From the sequence record NC_047815.1: 64,000 nt of DNA; one strand, 5' to 3'. A model generated the notes under the pieces. That model did not search any database. It was not told the DNA's origin and saw nothing but the letters and a program-made list of their open reading frames with translations. Below are positions 8,310 through 62,114 of the stretch, in pieces; within the stretch, counting starts at the first letter, position 1, and every line of letters begins with the position of its first letter. The position numbers and the translations under genes are program-made.

Positions 8310-10820
8310 ATGGCTAAAGTAGCGAAAGAGAAAGAGAAAAAGACTAAGATTAAGAAGTCCAAGACAGCAACAGCAGTGGCAACTACACTTGACGATATGG
8401 AAACTGGTGTTGTCGGTTTCGATATTGGGGATTTGATGGATGATCAGCTTGACCTGATCGAAAAGAAAACTAAAGTAAGCTCAGGCACAGCAGAACGTAA
8501 CGCACCTCGTGTATCAACAGGCCAGCTTGCGCTTGACATGTTCCTGAGTGGTGGCATCGTATCTGGTGGCTGGTATACGTTTAGTGGCGGTGAGCAGTCA
8601 TGTAAATCGACTCTCACGATGGCAATCATGGCCAGCCTGATTAAACTTGAATACGGCGGTATCAGTGCTGTGTTTGACTATGAAGGTTCAACAGATGCTG
8701 ACTATGTTGCTGGTCAGTTGAAAACGTTTGGCGTTACTGTTGACCCACGTACCATCTTTGGTGTGCGTGATGATACGAGCGGTGATTGGTTGATCAAACC
8801 TCGTATTCGTTACTATGCGCCAGACAACGGCACTCGCTTCTTTGACTGGATGAGTTCGCTGCGTCGCCGTCTGCCTGACAAGATTGTTGAGAAAGACGGT
8901 ACAGCATACATGTTGTTTGAGAACAACAAAGAGAATGCTAAAAAGCTGGCAGGTAAGTACGACAAGAAGTGGTTCAGTCGTCACAATCAGTTTAAAGTGC
9001 GTGCACCTGATGGTCACATGCAAGCAATGGTAATCGTTGATAGTTATCCTGCGATGCTGCCTGATCAGCTTGATGATGATGAAGGTTCAAACGCGATGGC
9101 GATTCAAGCGCGTATGTTCTCTGATGGTATCAAGCGTTTCCGTGGCGGTATGCGTGGTAAGATGATCACCATCGTCGGCGTTAACCAGTTACGTCAGAAG
9201 CCTGCGACCATGTTTGGTTCGCCCGAATATGAGCCCTGTGGGGACGCTCTCAAGTTCTACTGCTTTGACGCTACCACACTGATTCGTACCAACTTCGGTG
9301 TATTGACAGCGCCTGCTATTCAGAGCATGATGGCAGACGGTACAGAAGTGCTGGTGGAAACGCTGGGTGGCTTCGAACCTATCATGAAAGCATGGCGAGT
9401 TGAAGAACAACGCACTCCACTTGAATTGACCACAGCAGGCACAAGCTATATCGGCAGTGATCAACACCGCCAGCTAGTGTTCTATCGTGACGTTACTGAT
9501 CACAACGAGCCCGCGCTGCGAACTGAGTTCGCCACACTGAGCGATATTCAGTCTGCGAGCGGTGAAGTGTATGCGGTGATGCGTCTGTCCACTGTAGACG
9601 AACTGATGGAGTACAGCCACAAAGAGCGTAACGCCAGCCTGCGTTATGTCAATCAGTTCCTGCGTAGCGATGCCGTCAACACAATGATCAATGTCAGTGA
9701 AGGCTATCAGGTAGTTGCCGCTGTGTTGCGTGTTGGTGAGAATCACGTTGCGACTGTTATCTCAAGCCTGCTTGACCTTGGCATTATCAGCTACGAAGCC
9801 GCTAATCATACCGTGATCATTCCTGGTCTGAGTGTAGGCACAATGCGTACAGCTATTCTTGATTCAGTCACAACTGTTGAGAACAGCCTGATTCAACGTA
9901 GCGTTATGTTGCACCTCGCAATCGCAGACGCATTCCCTGAGCTGGCAAACTTTGTTGGTAAGTACAATCTTGCTGCTAACCTGCATGAAGCCGCGCACTT
10001 CGGTTCACACTATCAATCAGATGATTATGCATATCTGGCGGACAGCGAATCGATGGAGAAAGCACTCAAGCGTTTGGTCGCTCGTGACTTCCCTGAGTTT
10101 GCTGATCAGTATGATGAGATCTCACGTCAGGCGGCATACATTGATGACCTGTTAAGTCTCGATGAAAACTTGTACCCTGTCGCTTGCTCAGTGCGTGCTG
10201 TATCAGAGCAACAGCCCGTTGAATTGTGGGATGTTACTGTACCCGCCACCAGCGCTGTTGTTACTAACGGCTTTGTCAGTCATAACTCAGACGTGCGCAT
10301 TCGTCTTGCTTCGCGTGCTGTACCTCAAGGCTGGCCGACGCTTAAAGATGAACGTGCTATTGTTGGAGAGAAGTCTGTTACCGTTGAAGGTGGTATTGAC
10401 CGCTATCGTTTCATCGCTGCTAAGACCATCAAGAACAAGATGGGCGGCATCCCGAATCAGCAGACGTGGTTACGTTTGTGGGAAGCAGATGGCAATGGCG
10501 AAGCGCGTGGCTTTGACCCTGTGTTTGATACGTGGCACTATCTGAAAACGCTTGGTCTAATCAACGGTATGCGCAAGAAGTTCAAGATCAAAGCGCCTTG
10601 TCCTATCGCCAGCGATAAAGCGATGGACTGGGATCAGTTCCGTACTCTGATCAACGGAAGCAAAGCACAGATTACAGAAGTCTGTAAAGAACTTGGTGTG
10701 AAGCCTGGCAGTCTTCGCGCTTGGTGCTTCAAATTCATCGCCAGTGAAAAAGGTCAGGCTATGCTGAAAGACAGCATCAGCCGCAGTACCAAACAGAACG
10801 ACGACGAAGACGAAGATTAA
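8310..10820 (+). CDS. uvsX: RecA/UvsX recombinase interrupted by an intein
   Basis: Walker A-like GGEQSCKST, DYEG, VIVDS, ARMFS, NQLRQK, PEY..GDALKFY|SDVRIRL. Confidence 0.9.
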   Translation: MAKVAKEKEKKTKIKKSKTATAVATTLDDMETGVVGFDIGDLMDDQLDLIEKKTKVSSGTAERNAPRVSTGQLALDMFLSGGIVSGGWYTFSGGEQSCKSTLTMAIMASLIKLEYGGISAVFDYEGSTDADYVAGQLKTFGVTVDPRTIFGVRDDTSGDWLIKPRIRYYAPDNGTRFFDWMSSLRRRLPDKIVEKDGTAYMLFENNKENAKKLAGKYDKKWFSRHNQFKVRAPDGHMQAMVIVDSYPAMLPDQLDDDEGSNAMAIQARMFSDGIKRFRGGMRGKMITIVGVNQLRQKPATMFGSPEYEPCGDALKFYCFDATTLIRTNFGVLTAPAIQSMMADGTEVLVETLGGFEPIMKAWRVEEQRTPLELTTAGTSYIGSDQHRQLVFYRDVTDHNEPALRTEFATLSDIQSASGEVYAVMRLSTVDELMEYSHKERNASLRYVNQFLRSDAVNTMINVSEGYQVVAAVLRVGENHVATVISSLLDLGIISYEAANHTVIIPGLSVGTMRTAILDSVTTVENSLIQRSVMLHLAIADAFPELANFVGKYNLAANLHEAAHFGSHYQSDDYAYLADSESMEKALKRLVARDFPEFADQYDEISRQAAYIDDLLSLDENLYPVACSVRAVSEQQPVELWDVTVPATSAVVTNGFVSHNSDVRIRLASRAVPQGWPTLKDERAIVGEKSVTVEGGIDRYRFIAAKTIKNKMGGIPNQQTWLRLWEADGNGEARGFDPVFDTWHYLKTLGLINGMRKKFKIKAPCPIASDKAMDWDQFRTLINGSKAQITEVCKELGVKPGSLRAWCFKFIASEKGQAMLKDSISRSTKQNDDEDED
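9261..10286 (+). mobile_element. intein (342 aa, residues 318-659), probably with degenerate endonuclease region
   Basis: Begins CFDATT after ALKFY, ends TNGFVSHN before Ser; block-F-like LWDVTVP. Confidence 0.9.
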
Positions 10821-11672: not shown

Positions 11673-12698
11673 ATGTCTGATAAGCCTTGGCACTTAGAAA
11701 TTCACGATTCAACCATCAGCAACAACTTTTCTATCGGCATGAGTCGCAAGCATATGACCGCTGCGTTTGAAAAGTACATCGAAAAGAATAGTGGTCAAAT
11801 TCCATTTTACGCTTTCTCGTTTGAGGAGTTCTGTCGCTGGGCTGGCGATAGACATGTGCCTTGGAAAGATAAACCTGTACGCGCTAGTGTTATGCATAGC
11901 GTGAATCTTATCTACGGACAATTTCTCTGGTCCTTTACCAAAGGTTGTTTCTCACCTGAGAAAGGGCTGCTTGAGTATTTAATAAACAGTGAACTTCCTA
12001 AGACGTTTCCTGTCTCTATGTTGCGTCGTCTGCCTCACTGGTCACAATGGATAAACACAAATCTATGTGTTGATTACACCTCCTCTGGTACAATGTATTC
12101 CATCGAGAGTACAGGATTTTGGGCAACCTACTGCATGATTGAGGGACGCACGAATCTTTCTCTTTTCGGTCTAGGTCTGTTCAAGAATGGAGAGCAAGAC
12201 AGAGAGATTATGAATGTTCAGGCCATGTTTGAGATTGAAGAAGATCGACCAATCGAAGACACTCTGGAAACATTCATGTTTCTTATGGGAAGCGAAGGTA
12301 GATACGGTGTTGAGGAGACGCACCCTGATTACGAAAATATTCGTGATGCTATCATTGCTTGGGTAAAGCAAGCGGCCAACATCATTCTGTTTGTATCGAG
12401 TCAGGTAGATGACCTATACAAAGGCGGTGTCAAGCAAGTACAACCTCGACGTAAAGGTAAAAGCTATAAACTTATGCCTGTCGCTAAAGAGCGTAATTGG
12501 TCTGTCGGCACAGAGTTCCTGAACCCTATACGCGAGTATGAAAAAACTATAGGCACCATGACGTCTATTCAAAAGCGTGCTGCCCATATTCGTCGCGGTC
12601 ACTACCATAGTTTCTGGCGTGGACCTCGCGATGGACAACGTGAATTATTCAGCAAATGGTTGCCACCAACAGTTGTCAGAGGAACTTTAGAAACATAA
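11673..12698 (+). CDS. hypothetical protein with C-terminal HxRRGH motif
   Basis: GAGG SD; AHIRRGHYHSFWRGP...KWLPP. Confidence 0.75.
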   Translation: MSDKPWHLEIHDSTISNNFSIGMSRKHMTAAFEKYIEKNSGQIPFYAFSFEEFCRWAGDRHVPWKDKPVRASVMHSVNLIYGQFLWSFTKGCFSPEKGLLEYLINSELPKTFPVSMLRRLPHWSQWINTNLCVDYTSSGTMYSIESTGFWATYCMIEGRTNLSLFGLGLFKNGEQDREIMNVQAMFEIEEDRPIEDTLETFMFLMGSEGRYGVEETHPDYENIRDAIIAWVKQAANIILFVSSQVDDLYKGGVKQVQPRRKGKSYKLMPVAKERNWSVGTEFLNPIREYEKTIGTMTSIQKRAAHIRRGHYHSFWRGPRDGQRELFSKWLPPTVVRGTLET

Positions 12699-13137: not shown

Positions 13138-13797
13138 ATGGAAATCATTGTATCGCTGTCTTTTCAGCAGCCGAAAGAACCGCCCATCATCAGTTATGAT
13201 CCGCAAAAAGCTCCTCATGTGAATGACAACAGCAAGCCCGGTCAAGTGTTTGACTTGCACACGCTGCAACAGATGAGCTACCTCGACATGCGTAAAGTTC
13301 GAGGTGACGGTGGTGCGAAGTATGCTAAGGTGATTGCTGACTGGCTTAATGGTCAACGCAACATTGAAGTAAAGTTCCGTGTATCAAAGCGTAGCAAGAT
13401 CTCGATCGAGGTCAAGAACACAAAGCAAGAAGCAGCACGCTATACCACTGTGTATCTTCTTAGCCCAGAACGTTCAAAGTCCAAGAGCTGGATGCTGATT
13501 GGCGAAGGCCCGCACAACAACGTCAACTCTGTAGACCTTGGTGGTCGCTTGCAGCCTGACGTATTGTACGCAACAGCACGCAGTTTGCTTGGAGCGCATT
13601 TGCCTACTGACGAGTGGCCAGGAGACAACACTTGTGAGCAGGTAATTTTCAAGTTCGACAAGATGCGTAAAGAACATAAAACTGTTCCTGATCGTGCTTA
13701 CCGTTACGTAAACAAAAACGAATCCCAGATAATCACCATGATGCAAGATGGCATGAGCATCGATGCGATTGTGGCTTGGGTACTTAAACAAAGCTGA
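13138..13797 (+). CDS. hypothetical protein with N-terminal xIIxSLS tag
   Basis: GGAG SD; starts MEIIVSLSF. Confidence 0.75.
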   Translation: MEIIVSLSFQQPKEPPIISYDPQKAPHVNDNSKPGQVFDLHTLQQMSYLDMRKVRGDGGAKYAKVIADWLNGQRNIEVKFRVSKRSKISIEVKNTKQEAARYTTVYLLSPERSKSKSWMLIGEGPHNNVNSVDLGGRLQPDVLYATARSLLGAHLPTDEWPGDNTCEQVIFKFDKMRKEHKTVPDRAYRYVNKNESQIITMMQDGMSIDAIVAWVLKQS

Positions 13798-13804
13798 GGA
13801 AACT

Positions 13805-15262
13805 ATGAGCATCATTTCATTATCGGCCACAGCCGCACAGAAGGACGCTGCCGTCTATTTGTTTGGCTCTAAAGGGCACAGCATTATCGCTGCTATTGAA
13901 GCACTGGCTAAGTCCAAAGAACTCAACACTCCTCATCTGAATGGTCTGATGGCCATGCTGAAAGAAGCGGAAGATGATGAGATCATCAAGTTCAAAAACA
14001 GCGCTGGTGGCAAAAAGTCTATTGAGGCTGCAAAGCAGTTAGTTACGGCCAAGACTCTGGTAACCAGCATCAAGGCGCTGCGTGCTGTTAAGGTTCCGTC
14101 TAAGTGGATTCCTAATCACGATGACGTCAAGAACCAAGCTGTATCTGAAACCGTTGTGCATCGCGCTACTGGTCGCGGTACTCGTCCGAAGAAAGCTGAA
14201 CAGATGGTAAATCCTCAGGCACCTGAAGCAGAGGAGATTGATGACTACGCACAGTACGCAGACATTAAAAATCTAGCTGCCAAAGTTCAGGACGCTCTCG
14301 AAGAAGATCATGAGATGGACGTCAAGATTACTGGTCATGCTGCGAAAGGTAAAGGTTCTTCTGCATATATGGAGGTTAAACAAGGGCGTCGTGTATTAGG
14401 TTCAATCTTTGTTCCTTACGCCGGTCGTCAAGTCCGCAGTGGTGAGTGGTTTAACGCGTCCGAAATCACGATGCAAGTCGAAAGTTTCGAACACAACGAC
14501 ATGGTTTATGATAAGATGAAGGGCTTAGGTCTTATCGACGTTGCTGGGTCAATCGCTGACAAGTTTGCAGAGCTTGCAGAGAAAGCTAACAAAGGTCCAG
14601 ATACAACTTCTCGTCGTAAAGATGGTGCTCGTATGGAAGCAGTAACCAGCGATTACCCTAACAGTTTTAGAATTGACCCAGAGCGTAACCCTGGATTAAT
14701 TGCTAAGATTGATCCTTACTTTAATAAAATTTCAGGCAAGAAAAACAGATCTGTTCAAGCCCGAGGTATTGTCAACTTCTCGTTTGCTACCAAACGTGAT
14801 ATGAACAGCGTGATTAAACAGTTTGACCTGACTTTGAACGCTATCGGTGATGCATTCTATCACCCACCAAGAGTTGTTGGCAGCGTAGTGCCTAGTAAAA
14901 CTGCGGCCAAACGCACTACGACAAATTCAGACCTGTTTACGATCGGTAACGGTGCTACTACCGTTAAATCTGTCAAGCGTGTCAATAACGGTGGCATTGA
15001 AATTCAATTCGCTGGTCCGAAGCCTTCATCAGTTCTCGTCAGTACAGAAGATGAATGGTTAGTAGTTGAGAACAAGCGTGGCGGTCAGAGTGGTTGGGAC
15101 GTTGCTGCGGAATTCTTGAACAAAGCAATCGTTGCCGCAGGTTCTTCTGTTGTTGAGCAGTCAGACCAAGCGGGCTATGAAGGATTTAAGCTGCCTAATG
15201 ATGCGGAAGTTGATAAGGTTATTGCTTATCTCGCCAAACTTAAAATCAACGCAAAAAAGTAA
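13805..15262 (+). CDS. 485-aa protein with N-terminal SIISLS tag, candidate virion protein
   Basis: GAGG SD; starts MSIISLSAT; ends GCA AAA AAG TAA. Confidence 0.75.
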   Translation: MSIISLSATAAQKDAAVYLFGSKGHSIIAAIEALAKSKELNTPHLNGLMAMLKEAEDDEIIKFKNSAGGKKSIEAAKQLVTAKTLVTSIKALRAVKVPSKWIPNHDDVKNQAVSETVVHRATGRGTRPKKAEQMVNPQAPEAEEIDDYAQYADIKNLAAKVQDALEEDHEMDVKITGHAAKGKGSSAYMEVKQGRRVLGSIFVPYAGRQVRSGEWFNASEITMQVESFEHNDMVYDKMKGLGLIDVAGSIADKFAELAEKANKGPDTTSRRKDGARMEAVTSDYPNSFRIDPERNPGLIAKIDPYFNKISGKKNRSVQARGIVNFSFATKRDMNSVIKQFDLTLNAIGDAFYHPPRVVGSVVPSKTAAKRTTTNSDLFTIGNGATTVKSVKRVNNGGIEIQFAGPKPSSVLVSTEDEWLVVENKRGGQSGWDVAAEFLNKAIVAAGSSVVEQSDQAGYEGFKLPNDAEVDKVIAYLAKLKINAKK

Positions 15263-15309
15263 CAAGCGAGCCTGAGTCAACAACGACAAACAAATCTACA
15301 GCAACGCTG

Positions 15310-15642
15310 GTGGATGAGTTGTCCGAGATGCAGCCTCGCAAGTTCAGTAAGCTGAATAGCTTTGATCGATATAGCTACATGAAGGCACTGCGTGATATGG
15401 TGCACGATGCCATGCCTGCTGATGCCGACATACAAGTTGTATTGACTGACAACGATACGCGTCTGACGATCAGTAATGGTCGTCGCAAGACCTATCAGTT
15501 CTACATCAAAGGCAATAGCTGGATCATGTACGATCAGTCTGACAAATCCGAATCAAAGATGGGTGATTCCATCGATGTTTCTGAATTGATTGAGGTTGCA
15601 CATGAAACAGCAAACACCTCAAGTCTAATCAAGTTCAAATAA
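15310..15642 (+). CDS. hypothetical protein, possibly the -1 frameshift extension of the upstream gene
   Basis: No clear SD before GTG 15310; frame open back through the upstream slippery heptamer. Confidence 0.65.
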   Translation: MDELSEMQPRKFSKLNSFDRYSYMKALRDMVHDAMPADADIQVVLTDNDTRLTISNGRRKTYQFYIKGNSWIMYDQSDKSESKMGDSIDVSELIEVAHETANTSSLIKFK

Positions 15643-15645
15643 CCA

Positions 15646-15669
15646 AAAGGGTACCTTCGGGTGCCCTTT
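15646..15669 (+). terminator. intrinsic terminator
   Basis: AAAGGGTACC-TTCG-GGTGCCCTTT. Confidence 0.7.
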
Positions 15670-15926
15670 CACCGTTCTGTAACAAAATTTACAATCCAAT
15701 CATAAATAACCTATACAGGCCCGTCAGCCGAGTTGTGTCGTGTTTAACTCACAAGTTACCCTGCCTGTATCGCCACTATTGGTATAACTCTAGTACAGTT
15801 CGGTACGTCCGAAATCGATCTGAATCTTTCCTCTTGTTTTATCGTTAATTAAGCAGAGTAGGCAAGCTACCTACACACACTTATCTAGGCAAATTTGCTA
15901 TCGGTTAACACCAAGAGGAATATTCC

Positions 15927-17741
15927 ATGATCGAAGTAAACAGTTTTGATGAACTTCGCAAAACAGCTCCAAGCAAAGCTGGTGACCTTGCGATTTTGAA
16001 ACGCTACTACGACAAAGACAGCAAGTTCCGTGGCGGCGGTTGGTTCATCGGCTTCCCACAAACAAACGTACCTGCTGATGACGGTGGTATCAATGCCGTT
16101 GATGCAAACAAGAAATTCTTTTGGCAGCGCGTTGTAAACGATCCAGAAGAGATTAACATCATGCACTTCGGCGGCAAGTGCGATGGCAAGACCGATGACT
16201 CAGACGCATTCCGTCGCAACTTCATGTGGGTATACAACATGAAAGACGGCAGTGATACCTTAGGCGTTAAATTGCCTTCAGGTACCACTATGCTCAAGCC
16301 TATGGACTTTACTGATCTCGGTGAAGTACCTGTGTTCGCTGTGTATGGTGACACGCGCTGTACCAAAGGCTGGCGACCACGCGTCAAGATTATCAGTGAC
16401 AAGTCCGACCAAAACGTGTTCAAAGTAAAAGCGCGTCGCATGATCATTCAAGGCATCAACTGGAATGGTCAGTGTACTGCTGACACTACAAAGAACACGG
16501 GCGCCATTCCTCCTGAACTGCGTTCAAACAATCAGATCTTTTTTGAAAACATTTGCACCATGGGTCAATACATTGGTGTTCACTGTTTCCGTGCTGAGAA
16601 CAACGGTGGCTCCGCATTGAAGTTTCAAGACACCATTGATACTTCAATCACAGAGATCTACGGCTCTAAAAGCTATGGCGCCGTGATTGAAGCCAAGTGG
16701 TCAAACACAGTGCAAGCAGGTTGGAATCACTCTACTGCTGTGCGTCTTGAGAACGGTAACTTCCAGTACGGCTACGGTCCTGCTGTGCTTGATATGCCGC
16801 GCATGACTCAGGCATTCATGAAGAACATCTGGATTGAGCACACTCGCTTCCCAGGTAACTTGAATGATGGTCAGTGGGTATTCGAAGGTAACTCTATCGA
16901 GAGTTCTGACAATCCACTTAACCTTGCTAACACTCGTTGCGTTATCAACGGCTTCTACTTCCAGGGTAAAGGTACCATGAATCTGGAACGTGCTAAGAGC
17001 CCTGATAACTGGTTGAGTGGTTACGAGCGTGGTAACATTCGCACAGAGACCTATGGTATCATCATGACCGATAGCTGTTTCCGTGCTGGCTACTACACTG
17101 GCTACAAGATTACGAACAACACTGACCAAGACAAGTGGTTCTACATCGGCAGTTTCTCTTTCCCTAAAATGAATCAGATCTGGGAGATTGAACTGTTGGG
17201 TAAAGCTGGTGGCACCGTACCAAATGCGAAAAGCCAACAGCCTGTCGATATGACTGGTATGGGTCGTCGCGTTATCACGATGCAGCGTTGCAACACTCCT
17301 AACAAGAAAGTGTATGCTGATATGCGTCAAGAAGGCACAGATGGTATTGCAGATGTTGTGTACCAGCGTCTGTGGGAAGATTACGGCAAAGTGTTTATTA
17401 AGCTGAAAGCCAACAGCGGTGACACTATCTTCAATCTGACAACTACTGGTCCAACTCGCTTTGAAGCTGGTCAGTGTACGTTGTTCTCCGACGGTCCATG
17501 TGAATGTGTTGACGATCTGCTGACTGAAATGACAACCAGCGTAGAGAAGAATCAGAAAGACTATGCTCGTCCTCAAAATCGTTTCAGTCTCCACAATGGT
17601 CTTGCTGGCATCGGCGCAAACGAACAGGGTGTGCTGACCATGCAGACGGCAGAAGGTAAGGCGCCGAAAGATCTTACCAAACCAGCGGGATATACCACTA
17701 TCAACATTAACGGCGTTGATCGTGTGATCCCATACTTCTAA
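15927..17741 (+). CDS. AmsF/WceF-like tailspike-fold EPS-modifying glycanase
   Basis: N-terminal DDGG...HFGGKCDGKTDDSDAF beta-helix cap; WNHSTAVRL, WIEH..FPG, RFSLHNGLAGIGANEQG resemble AmsF/WceF as recalled. Confidence 0.7.
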   Translation: MIEVNSFDELRKTAPSKAGDLAILKRYYDKDSKFRGGGWFIGFPQTNVPADDGGINAVDANKKFFWQRVVNDPEEINIMHFGGKCDGKTDDSDAFRRNFMWVYNMKDGSDTLGVKLPSGTTMLKPMDFTDLGEVPVFAVYGDTRCTKGWRPRVKIISDKSDQNVFKVKARRMIIQGINWNGQCTADTTKNTGAIPPELRSNNQIFFENICTMGQYIGVHCFRAENNGGSALKFQDTIDTSITEIYGSKSYGAVIEAKWSNTVQAGWNHSTAVRLENGNFQYGYGPAVLDMPRMTQAFMKNIWIEHTRFPGNLNDGQWVFEGNSIESSDNPLNLANTRCVINGFYFQGKGTMNLERAKSPDNWLSGYERGNIRTETYGIIMTDSCFRAGYYTGYKITNNTDQDKWFYIGSFSFPKMNQIWEIELLGKAGGTVPNAKSQQPVDMTGMGRRVITMQRCNTPNKKVYADMRQEGTDGIADVVYQRLWEDYGKVFIKLKANSGDTIFNLTTTGPTRFEAGQCTLFSDGPCECVDDLLTEMTTSVEKNQKDYARPQNRFSLHNGLAGIGANEQGVLTMQTAEGKAPKDLTKPAGYTTININGVDRVIPYF

Positions 17742-32821: not shown

Positions 32822-33247
32822 ATGCCTCGACCTATGTCTAGTCCGTATCGCACTATGGAAATAACTCTTCCGAACCTTGCCGCTTTCTTCGAAGATCTCA
32901 AGCAAGACTCGGACGCTGTTAAGATTGTAGAACAAATGCAATGGGCAGTGCATGATCCAGACGTTCGCATCTATGCTGCTTACTACGACAACAGACCAGT
33001 TGCTGTTATTGGTATTCTGCAAGATGTGTATCTGCGTTTCATTGTGGTACGTGAACCACATCGACGCAAGGGCGTAGGTCGTTCGCTTGTTGAGAAGTAC
33101 GCTCAACATGTGAAAGGTATAACTGTAGATAAAAGTGATACAGGTTGTCAAATGTTCTTCCGCAAAGTTGGTTGGGTCGATTACGAAGCAATGCAGCTTG
33201 ACCAGCTTGACCAGCTTGCAATGATTCGCGGTGATTTTTTAGCATAA
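32822..33247 (+). CDS. GNAT-family acetyltransferase
   Basis: FIVVREPHRRKGVGRSLV motif A; FFRKVGW motif B. Confidence 0.8.
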   Translation: MPRPMSSPYRTMEITLPNLAAFFEDLKQDSDAVKIVEQMQWAVHDPDVRIYAAYYDNRPVAVIGILQDVYLRFIVVREPHRRKGVGRSLVEKYAQHVKGITVDKSDTGCQMFFRKVGWVDYEAMQLDQLDQLAMIRGDFLA

Positions 33248-33254
33248 GGTTTTT

Positions 33255-34238
33255 ATGAAACTCGGATTCGCCTGTAAACTTATTGACGAGAACGGCAAGC
33301 AACCATTCGCTAGTCGCAGCGTCAACTTTTCTCAATTGTCTAAGCTGTCTGAAACAGATCAGATTGCAAAGCTGATAGAGATTGCACAGCACAATGTTCA
33401 GGCCCTGTATGATATGATTGTTCATGTTGGTCGCTTGCGTCCTGATATGCGTATGTTCCGCATCACCAGTGGCTTGCTGCCGTTGTTTACTCATGAGCAC
33501 GTCCATCATCTGTATGTTGAGTACGTGAATGATCTGATTGCGCCTCAGCTTGCAGCGTGTGGTCGTGCCGCTCGTAGTCGTGACGTTCGTATCAGCTTTC
33601 ACCCAGGTCAGTTTACCGTGCTTGCCTCTCATCGTCCTGACGTGATTGAGAACAGCATCGAGGAACTTGAGTACCACACCTGGTGTGCAGTTCAGATGGG
33701 TTATGGTCGCAAGTTCCAAGACTTCAAGATCAATATTCATCTGTCAGGTAAACTTGGCGCATTCGAGTTTCGTCGTAGCTTCGGTCGTCTCAGCCGTGAG
33801 TGTCGTCGTATGCTCACAGTTGAAAACGACGAAGTGTCCTCAAGCATTGAAGAATGTTTGACGCTTGCGGACATCTGTCCTGTTGTTCTCGACATTCACC
33901 ATCATTGGGTTATGACCAACGAGTACATATCTAGTGGTGACAGTCGCGTTCAGCAGGTTATCGACTCTTGGCGCGGCGTTAGGCCGACGATGCATTTCAG
34001 TGTATCACGCCCAGAGTTTGTTCCTTCAGACACACTGCCAGACCAGAACAAGTTGAGCGTCAACAAGGTCAAGCTACGTGCTCACAGTGACTACTACCAC
34101 AACGAGGTAGTTAATGCATGGGCACTGTCATTTGACCAGTTCGATATTATGTGCGAGTCGAAAGCTAAGAATCTAGCGCGAACAGCGTTGCTTTTAAGGC
34201 AGCCGTACTCTGCAAATCATTGGTCAAAAAACAGCTAG
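33255..34238 (+). CDS. uvsE: UV-damage endonuclease
   Basis: LGFACK, FRITSGLLP, SFHPGQF, NIH, LTVENDE, VLDIHHH, HFS, AHSD, MCESKAK. Confidence 0.92.
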   Translation: MKLGFACKLIDENGKQPFASRSVNFSQLSKLSETDQIAKLIEIAQHNVQALYDMIVHVGRLRPDMRMFRITSGLLPLFTHEHVHHLYVEYVNDLIAPQLAACGRAARSRDVRISFHPGQFTVLASHRPDVIENSIEELEYHTWCAVQMGYGRKFQDFKINIHLSGKLGAFEFRRSFGRLSRECRRMLTVENDEVSSSIEECLTLADICPVVLDIHHHWVMTNEYISSGDSRVQQVIDSWRGVRPTMHFSVSRPEFVPSDTLPDQNKLSVNKVKLRAHSDYYHNEVVNAWALSFDQFDIMCESKAKNLARTALLLRQPYSANHWSKNS

Positions 34239-61544: not shown

Positions 61545-62114
61545 ATGGCAAAGTCCACTAGCACTGCACTGGTAGCACCGACTCGTATCAACCGCATTTC
61601 TAAAAAGAGCGGTTCTATTTCACAGTCTGCTGCTAAAGCGTCTCAGATGCCGCACGATGTAACTATCACCGCTACTCAGGTTTACGATGTTCAGGGTTTC
61701 ATCACTGAACTGACTGCTGACAGCGTAACTATTCGTCACAAACGTGGCTTCGGTTCAAGCGCCCAGGTTCTGTCAACGTTCCCACGCAGTCAAGTTATCG
61801 AGCTGGTGGGTGATACCGGTACTTTCGGTAGCCTGAGTGTTCTGGGCAACGTGCCTGTTCGTACTCTGAAAGGTCAGTTGCTGTCGTTTAAGGGTACTCA
61901 AGTCATTGCTACTGACTTCGATACCAAAGAAGTTACCGTGCTGAACACAACCGTGCCTGGCGTGTCTATCACTTACGCTGTGAACGAAACTGCCGCTGCT
62001 AAAAAGTATGGCATTGCTGCTCCGACCAAAGGCAAGAAAGCTGACGCGAAAGCAGCGCCTGCTAAAGCTGCTAAAGGCGGTAAGCCAGTCAAGGCTGGTA
62101 AATCAAAAAAGTAA
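61545..62114 (+). CDS. basic protein with beta-rich core and K/A tail
   Basis: GGAG SD; ends TCA AAA AAG TAA. Confidence 0.8.
   Translation: MAKSTSTALVAPTRINRISKKSGSISQSAAKASQMPHDVTITATQVYDVQGFITELTADSVTIRHKRGFGSSAQVLSTFPRSQVIELVGDTGTFGSLSVLGNVPVRTLKGQLLSFKGTQVIATDFDTKEVTVLNTTVPGVSITYAVNETAAAKKYGIAAPTKGKKADAKAAPAKAAKGGKPVKAGKSKK

Follow-up and report, generated by a model that had tools for sequence, protein, structure and literature searches.

Programmed −1 ribosomal frameshifting at X_XXA_AAG heptamers is known from E. coli dnaX and the IS3 family (IS911, IS3, and IS150), in which the heptamer A_AAA_AAG is read by the single enterobacterial tRNA-Lys and a stem-loop lies approximately 5–7 nucleotides (nt) downstream, with a trans-frame fusion (OrfAB) as the product in IS3. 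It is also known from lambda gpG/gpGT (G_GGA_AAG) and its counterparts in tailed phages, where an X_XXA_AAG shift close to the 3′ terminus of the gene yields a minor long form whose N-terminal part is also that of the major short form, at a position conserved across diverged phages. In T7 10A/10B, the T3 capsid protein, and related cases, an extra C-terminal domain is appended through a shift just before the gene ends, and immunoglobulin (Ig)-like C-terminal domains are added to phage structural proteins by frameshifting, according to Fraser et al. (2006) as cited in PMC5009743. Much of this layout recurs at the locus described here, which is formed by gp244 and gp245 of Erwinia phage vB_EamM_Yoloswag (KY448244), a jumbo myovirus of 259.7 kb in the “hairy Myoviridae” group; each of the two is annotated in GenBank as a hypothetical protein. 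The analyzed stretch of 64,000 nt, hereafter the window, corresponds to record positions 186001–250000, and its bases 13700–15800 matched the record at 100% identity. Our comparative analysis indicated that gp244 and gp245 are very probably one gene, decoded via programmed −1 ribosomal frameshifting to give a short and a long form, and it provided good support for regarding the site as a previously unannotated member of the classical enterobacterial dnaX/IS3-type frameshift class.

The 0-frame open reading frame (ORF), gp244 (YOLOSWAG_243; 13805–15262, plus strand, as are the other elements of the locus), starts at ATG 13805, not at 13806, and encodes 485 aa, the predicted short isoform, with a conserved helical N-domain (approximately residues 1–145) followed by variable middle modules. 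Its last codons read GCA AAA AAG TAA, so that the slippery heptamer A_AAA_AAG (15253–15259) stands in the X_XXY_YYZ phase of the gene, and the 0-frame stop TAA (15260–15262) is held within a 6-nt spacer (15260–15265). In the −1 frame, a stop at 15241–15243 is followed by an open stretch that extends from 15244 to 15642; because of this stop, a productive −1 shift could occur only within 19 nt, and the heptamer lies inside this interval. Reading after the slip would give VTSEPESTTTNKSTATLVDE... over 127 codons and a stop (the −1 frame extension, 15259–15642), comprising a linker and a conserved alpha/beta C-domain, and the predicted long isoform would have 485 + 127 = 612 aa. As annotated in GenBank, gp245 (15310–15642) covers only the part of this extension that follows a GTG codon, and has 110 aa. 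An earlier reading of the DNA made without database searches (the original prediction) had pointed to a dnaX-type A_AAA_AAG directly before the gp244 stop, with the −1 frame open into the next ORF and a product of approximately 612 aa; both the layout and the length were confirmed. In all 84 coding sequences (CDS) of the first 50 kb of the window (15,585 codons), A_AAA_AAG occurred in phase once, and one other in-phase X_XXA_AAG was found.

The two pieces proved to be joined in relatives. When both pieces were used as tblastn queries, related jumbo phages were found to carry them in one frame, separated by a few hundred bases, and a single annotated ORF carrying the N-domain together with a gp245-like domain was found in pEa_SNUABM_5 (277 aa), pEa_SNUABM_30 (416 aa), AD1_244 (512 aa), and Alexandra_254 (699 aa). 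A search of a large protein collection yielded 25 family members, 20 of which carried the gp245-type domain in frame, as judged by a hidden Markov model of the C-domain, while in members lacking this domain a distinct ORF came next, in the −1 frame. The family is modular: the conserved helical N-domain of approximately 145 aa (mean column identity of 71% in the family alignment) is combined with middle modules, which vary in number, and with a gp245-type domain that is usually C-terminal. The N-domain was present in 92 representative proteins, which are uncharacterized.

At least nine distinct split lineages were identified, some represented by cultured phages (among them Y3 and pEp_SNUABM_52) and others by metagenomes assembled independently, and in all of them the heptamer is in phase, the stop follows 0–1 codon on, the downstream ORF lies at −1, and the frame is open across the junction. 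With the heptamer in brackets, the junction reads GC[A AAA AAG] TAA in Yoloswag and in the independent ENA assembly L011, GT[A AAA AAG] TAA in L012, in which the upstream ORF has only 168 aa, and GC[A AAA AAG] TAG in Y3 and pEp_SNUABM_52 (cultured isolates from Switzerland and Korea) and in the metagenomic L177. One codon separates heptamer and stop in the metagenome assemblies L008 (TC[A AAA AAG] ATC TAA), L186 (CT[A AAA AAG] CTG TAA), L009 (GT[C CCA AAG] AAG TAA), and L176 (CC[C CCA AAG] CGG TAG), as well as in L010 and L013–L017 (CG[C CCA AAG] AAC TAA), of which L013–L017 come from five sequencing runs. A_AAA_AAG and C_CCA_AAG are both highly shift-prone in E. coli (PMC5009743). Close relatives with similar C-domains differed in their heptamer, it being A_AAA_AAG in L186 and C_CCA_AAG in L010 and L013, which suggests at the sequence level that slipperiness, rather than a particular sequence, is conserved. 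The original prediction had proposed a −1 frameshift with two isoforms and had named heptamer conservation or an in-frame fusion in relatives as a check; both were found, and the proposal is now strongly supported by the in-frame relatives and by the heptamer, frame, stop position, and hairpin kept across nine split lineages.

In the N-domain tree, the split genes fell in two places. Six belonged to a Yoloswag/Rivsvirus-like clade, alongside the in-frame genes of pEa_SNUABM_5 (SNU5) and P0005, and three formed a subclade (SH-aLRT support of 83) within an Alexandra/Sasquatchvirus-like clade, of which the other 22 members placed in the tree are in frame. The tree required four state changes, at least three of which were forced by strongly supported branches. 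The junction of L176 could not be compared informatively with that of its closest in-frame relative, P0022, because the modules past the junction differ. A 16-base degenerate motif scan of metagenome and viral contigs returned chance matches and Yoloswag only, the pattern being too loose, and a close-relative locus scan of IMG/VR returned Yoloswag only. One further candidate, L175 (Logan ERR13298114), was rejected as a split case, as comparison with P0008, which is in frame and nearly identical, revealed two A5-to-A4 deletions in L175 (at approximately 3305 and 3750). These lie inside conserved sequence, with neither an in-phase heptamer nor an adjacent stop, and L175 probably represents homopolymer assembly errors or a truly broken gene.

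Downstream of the heptamer, an irregular hairpin of 74 nt (15266–15339) was predicted as a candidate stimulator, with a basal stem pairing 15266–15274 with 15331–15339 and an apical part at 15284–15325. The bulged hairpin that had been noticed at 15285–15323 does exist, as the apical part of this larger structure, but the accompanying remark that it lies further away than typical stimulators did not stand, since the predicted basal stem starts 6 nt past the heptamer. The Yoloswag hairpin had a predicted folding energy of −25.6 kcal/mol (z = −2.8). In a gapless junction alignment of nine Yoloswag-like sequences (heptamer at columns 10–16 and hairpin at columns 23–96), the spacer, which holds the stop, was 6 nt long in 9/9 sequences and was followed by an invariant GCGAG. 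RNAalifold gave a consensus of 25 pairs for the 74-nt hairpin, and six single sequences each folded alike (−24.6 to −32.1 kcal/mol; z of −2.1 to −3.35). The cells of the hairpin were paired in 96.4% of cases, in contrast to 26–39% with slid partners; three pairs exhibited compensatory changes, and the covariation score was above that of 500/500 shuffles. The 5′ arm, AGC GAG, was invariant within an otherwise variable linker. Identity at third codon positions was 0.73 in the hairpin region and 0.54 in the rest of the ORF, and the synonymous substitution rate (dS) was approximately halved in the hairpin region, a pattern that fits an RNA-level constraint added to coding. In Y3, L177, and L176, different and unrelated hairpins (approximately −18 to −23 kcal/mol) were predicted to start 2–6 nt past the heptamer. 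The locus thus combines four of the features by which a programmed −1 site is recognized, namely, an in-phase heptamer on which both tRNAs could re-pair, an open −1 frame with an extension homologous to the in-frame C-domains of relatives, a predicted 3′ structure at the expected distance of approximately 5–9 nt, and conservation in diverged relatives.

The best-surviving alternative is that gp245 is a separate gene, initiated on its own at ATG 15328 or GTG 15310 or by termination–reinitiation after TAA 15260, with the heptamer a coincidence. GenBank and automatic gene callers do split gp244 and gp245, and yet we regard this explanation as unlikely. The original prediction had seen no clear Shine–Dalgarno (SD) sequence at GTG 15310, and this was borne out, as the codon had no SD pairing (duplex of +1.2 kcal/mol) and was weaker in this respect than 83/83 annotated starts in the window. 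Four residues of the −1 reading (K12, L17, V18, and D19) did not vary across the aligned family, and K12 and L17 precede GTG 15310, which corresponds to V18. The C-domain of approximately 100 aa was predicted as alpha/beta, with three N-terminal helices, five strands, and one C-terminal helix; in the AF2 (AlphaFold2) model of the extension (pLDDT, the predicted local distance difference test score, of 85; pTM, the predicted template modeling score, of 0.79), the first helix (residues 14–23) spans the annotated GTG. A separate gene would cost these invariant residues and helix 1, and GTG 15310 is probably not the real N-terminus of gp245. The first ATG, GTG, or TTG comes only after 47 codons with homology to in-frame relatives in Y3 and L177, and after 46 in L176; residues 12–244 of the L176 −1 reading shared 57% identity with uninterrupted internal stretches of in-frame proteins, the called ORF beginning at residue 58. 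The codon-position counts in the linker upstream of the GTG were too small to decide alone. The −1 ORF had a dN/dS (ratio of nonsynonymous to synonymous rates) of 0.07–0.19, with dS saturated between lineages (1.2–1.9), which indicates, as far as sequence comparison goes, that it is under purifying selection. Separate initiation leaves unexplained why nine dS-saturated lineages keep the −1 offset, an in-phase X_XXA_AAG, a near stop, and a hairpin at fixed spacing.

Several observations nevertheless weigh against decoding by frameshifting. ATG 15328, said in the original prediction to follow only a weak SD, does have an SD-like match, the pairing of which was graded as moderate (−4.9 kcal/mol, at approximately the 40th percentile of annotated starts) at long spacing. 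Some independent initiation of a 104-aa product could possibly occur there as a side route, and may coexist with frameshifting as a minor one, with the reservation that this ATG lies in the 3′ arm of the hairpin. The gene gp321 (61545–62114) likewise ends TC[A AAA AAG] TAA, with an in-phase heptamer at 62105–62111, and its −1 extension is only 7 codons (VSSDEDF), which is no meaningful extension. This site came from the part of the window beyond 50 kb, where the check covered only AAAAAAG sites, and both in-phase A_AAA_AAG sites found directly precede a stop. The gp321 case shows that heptamer plus stop can occur without consequence, and so is not diagnostic alone; the case is made by the comparative evidence. 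The hairpin covariation amounts to three pairs in nine related sequences, from which the structure itself was derived, and the basal stem gave no covariation signal because it is invariant. The 3′ arm (CAGCCTCGC) is also kept in the in-frame SNU5, where it encodes QPR, and therefore only the 5′ arm is specific to split genes.

Transcriptional slippage, in which RNA polymerase would add an A within the A6 run so that some mRNAs carry the fusion in frame with no ribosomal frameshifting, appears very unlikely. A-runs are known slippage sites, and one inserted A would give the same fusion plus one Lys. Six A's, however, are short for efficient slippage by bacterial RNA polymerase, the Yoloswag run is only A6, and the CCCAAAG found at the same position in four lineages is unable to slip in this way. 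A long A or T homopolymer run shared by all members, as expected of a transcriptional slippage site, was not found, and such slippage leaves the hairpin at ribosomal spacing and the strict codon phase of the heptamer unexplained. Least likely of all is that the split arose from A7 being misread as A6 during sequencing or assembly, or from a homopolymer mutation that recently inactivated the gene and left gp245 as a decaying remnant, since, even though one added A would restore the frame at the A6 run and homopolymer-type frameshifts are present in the data set (L175 versus P0008), the same state occurs in the independent assembly L011 (with the same A6 run), in both cultured Sasquatchvirus isolates (one Swiss, one Korean), and in the five separate runs of L013–L017, four lineages have C_CCA_AAG with no long run, the −1 ORF is under the purifying selection described above, Yoloswag was sequenced by Illumina at approximately 100× coverage (PMC5690319), and the true error-type case, L175, looks different. 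We consider sequencing error, a pseudogene, and transcriptional slippage to be effectively excluded.

Under the preferred reading, that of one gene decoded by −1 frameshifting, the majority of ribosomes would read GCA AAA AAG and terminate at TAA 15260 to give the 485-aa short form. A fraction of ribosomes would have two tRNA-Lys on AAA-AAG when meeting the base of the 74-nt hairpin 6 nt downstream, and these would slip back onto A-AAA-AA, a single base upstream, and read on in the −1 frame (VTSEPE...) through the linker and the alpha/beta domain of approximately 100 aa to give the 612-aa long form. With the stop codon placed in the spacer, unshifted translation would terminate precisely where one module meets the next. 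Sequence comparison yielded the layout and its conservation, the fused ORFs of relatives, and the purifying selection on the −1 ORF; the slip itself, the shift efficiency, the stimulatory role of the hairpin, and the role of the adjacent stop we infer from enterobacterial X_XXA_AAG sites (dnaX and the IS3 family).

The function of the protein was searched for by sequence and by fold. No match was found in Pfam or PHROGs for gp244, gp245, 26 family members, or 10 distant N-domain relatives, nor in a sequence profile search of the PDB. Foldseek searches with the C-domain model gave nothing significant in the PDB (best E of 0.26) and only family members in BFVD, and the AF2 model of gp244 was too poor for use (pLDDT of 47.7). 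The papers searched contained no proteomic data on this gene. The original prediction had called the product a virion protein, and this label found no support, as Pfam, PHROGs, the PDB sequence search, and the two fold libraries yielded nothing beyond family members.

Between lineages, nucleotide identity rose from 30% immediately before the heptamer to 81% over the stretch that the heptamer opens and the 3′ arm closes, and was 72% across the remainder of the ORF. This jump implies a homologous cassette that has the heptamer as its first element and is preceded by differing modules, the upstream parts ranging from 168 to 485 aa. According to the tree, the family has also switched at least three times between frameshift-dependent and in-frame expression. 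We tentatively raise the possibility, which is doubtful at present, that heptamer, stop, hairpin, and C-domain form a portable cassette. If so, frameshift efficiency would be a tunable dial in “hairy” jumbo phages for the share of modular-protein copies bearing the terminal domain, and the frameshift signal itself would have spread through module shuffling. Apart from this, reading the locus as one recoded gene would correct the annotated genomes of no fewer than three cultured phages (Yoloswag, Y3, and pEp_SNUABM_52), in each of which two “hypothetical proteins” would become one, and would add a new, phylogenetically supported −1 frameshift family in jumbo phages. Correct gene models would be of practical value because these phages are biocontrol candidates for fire blight and soft rot. 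The natural variants, with two heptamers, a stop 0 or 1 codon on, differing hairpins, and in-frame relatives, offer a ready mutational series, and a family in which one domain is expressed either in frame or via a frameshift bears on the origin of recoding signals during module shuffling.

The locus is flanked by a UvsX-like recombinase region on one side and an exopolysaccharide (EPS)-depolymerase or tail-spike-like gene on the other, with hypothetical genes also among its neighbors, and no tRNA genes were found in the window. On the recombinase side, gp239 (8310–10820, “putative RecA”), which is UvsX/RecA-like, has 836 aa, approximately twice the usual length; the PHROG UvsX profile (506 positions) was stretched across residues 1–832, and the Pfam RecA match consisted of two separate stretches, so that the gene may hold a large insertion, which could be an intein or an additional domain. 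Two genes upstream of the frameshift gene, gp241 (11673–12698) has homologues in L008, L012, L175, L176, and L186 with Pfam PF26125 (AcrVA2-like, an anti-CRISPR family); Yoloswag gp241 itself had no Pfam match at E ≤ 0.01, and it could be a counter-defence gene. A GC-rich hairpin (15643–15675) directly follows the −1 ORF stop, with a terminator-like score on the minus strand (15660–15643), and may close the gp243–gp245 transcription unit. On the other side, gp246 (15927–17741) is annotated as an “exopolysaccharide biosynthesis protein”; it matched a PHROG EPS-depolymerase/tail family (E = 8e-216), its relatives carry PF27114 (Phage_tail_beta), and its product is more probably a depolymerase or tail spike than an enzyme of biosynthesis. 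Elsewhere in the window, two adjacent genes each carry an in-phase heptamer two codons short of the gene end, A_AAA_AAC in gp280 (34226–34232; UvsE-like) and T_TTT_TTA in gp279 (33235–33241), with −1 extensions of only 21 and 5 codons, respectively, and with following genes that are not in the −1 frame. Runs of seven or more A or T were absent from both strands of the 64 kb, and A6 runs numbered 11 on the plus strand and 5 on the minus strand, which suggests that long homopolymer runs are avoided in the window.

Set against the known systems, the Yoloswag site departs from dnaX and the IS3 family in having its stop codon within the spacer and in showing no sequence similarity to them; Rfam gave no family at the junction. 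Those systems have an upstream SD-like enhancer, whereas none was consistently visible when the Yoloswag and related junction sequences were read by eye, no scan having been run. The shift truncates the protein in dnaX, whereas it would extend it in Yoloswag. In comparison with lambda gpG/gpGT, the gene has no tail tube or tape-measure neighbors, so that it does not precede a tape-measure gene, and no match to a chaperone family, as a tail assembly chaperone of the G/GT class would show; moreover, many of its relatives have the two parts fused in frame, an arrangement that is not the norm in G/GT. The parallel with T7 gp10A/B drawn in the original prediction holds as an analogy of layout, not as homology. 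Unlike the domains added in the T7, T3, and Ig-like cases, including capsid and other structural proteins of the T3 and A2 type, the Yoloswag domain is not Ig-like, being alpha/beta with neither an Ig match nor a fold match, and its carrier is an uncharacterized protein. On both sides, however, the domain is in frame in some relatives and out of frame in others, and this mixture suggests module shuffling followed by selection for expression.

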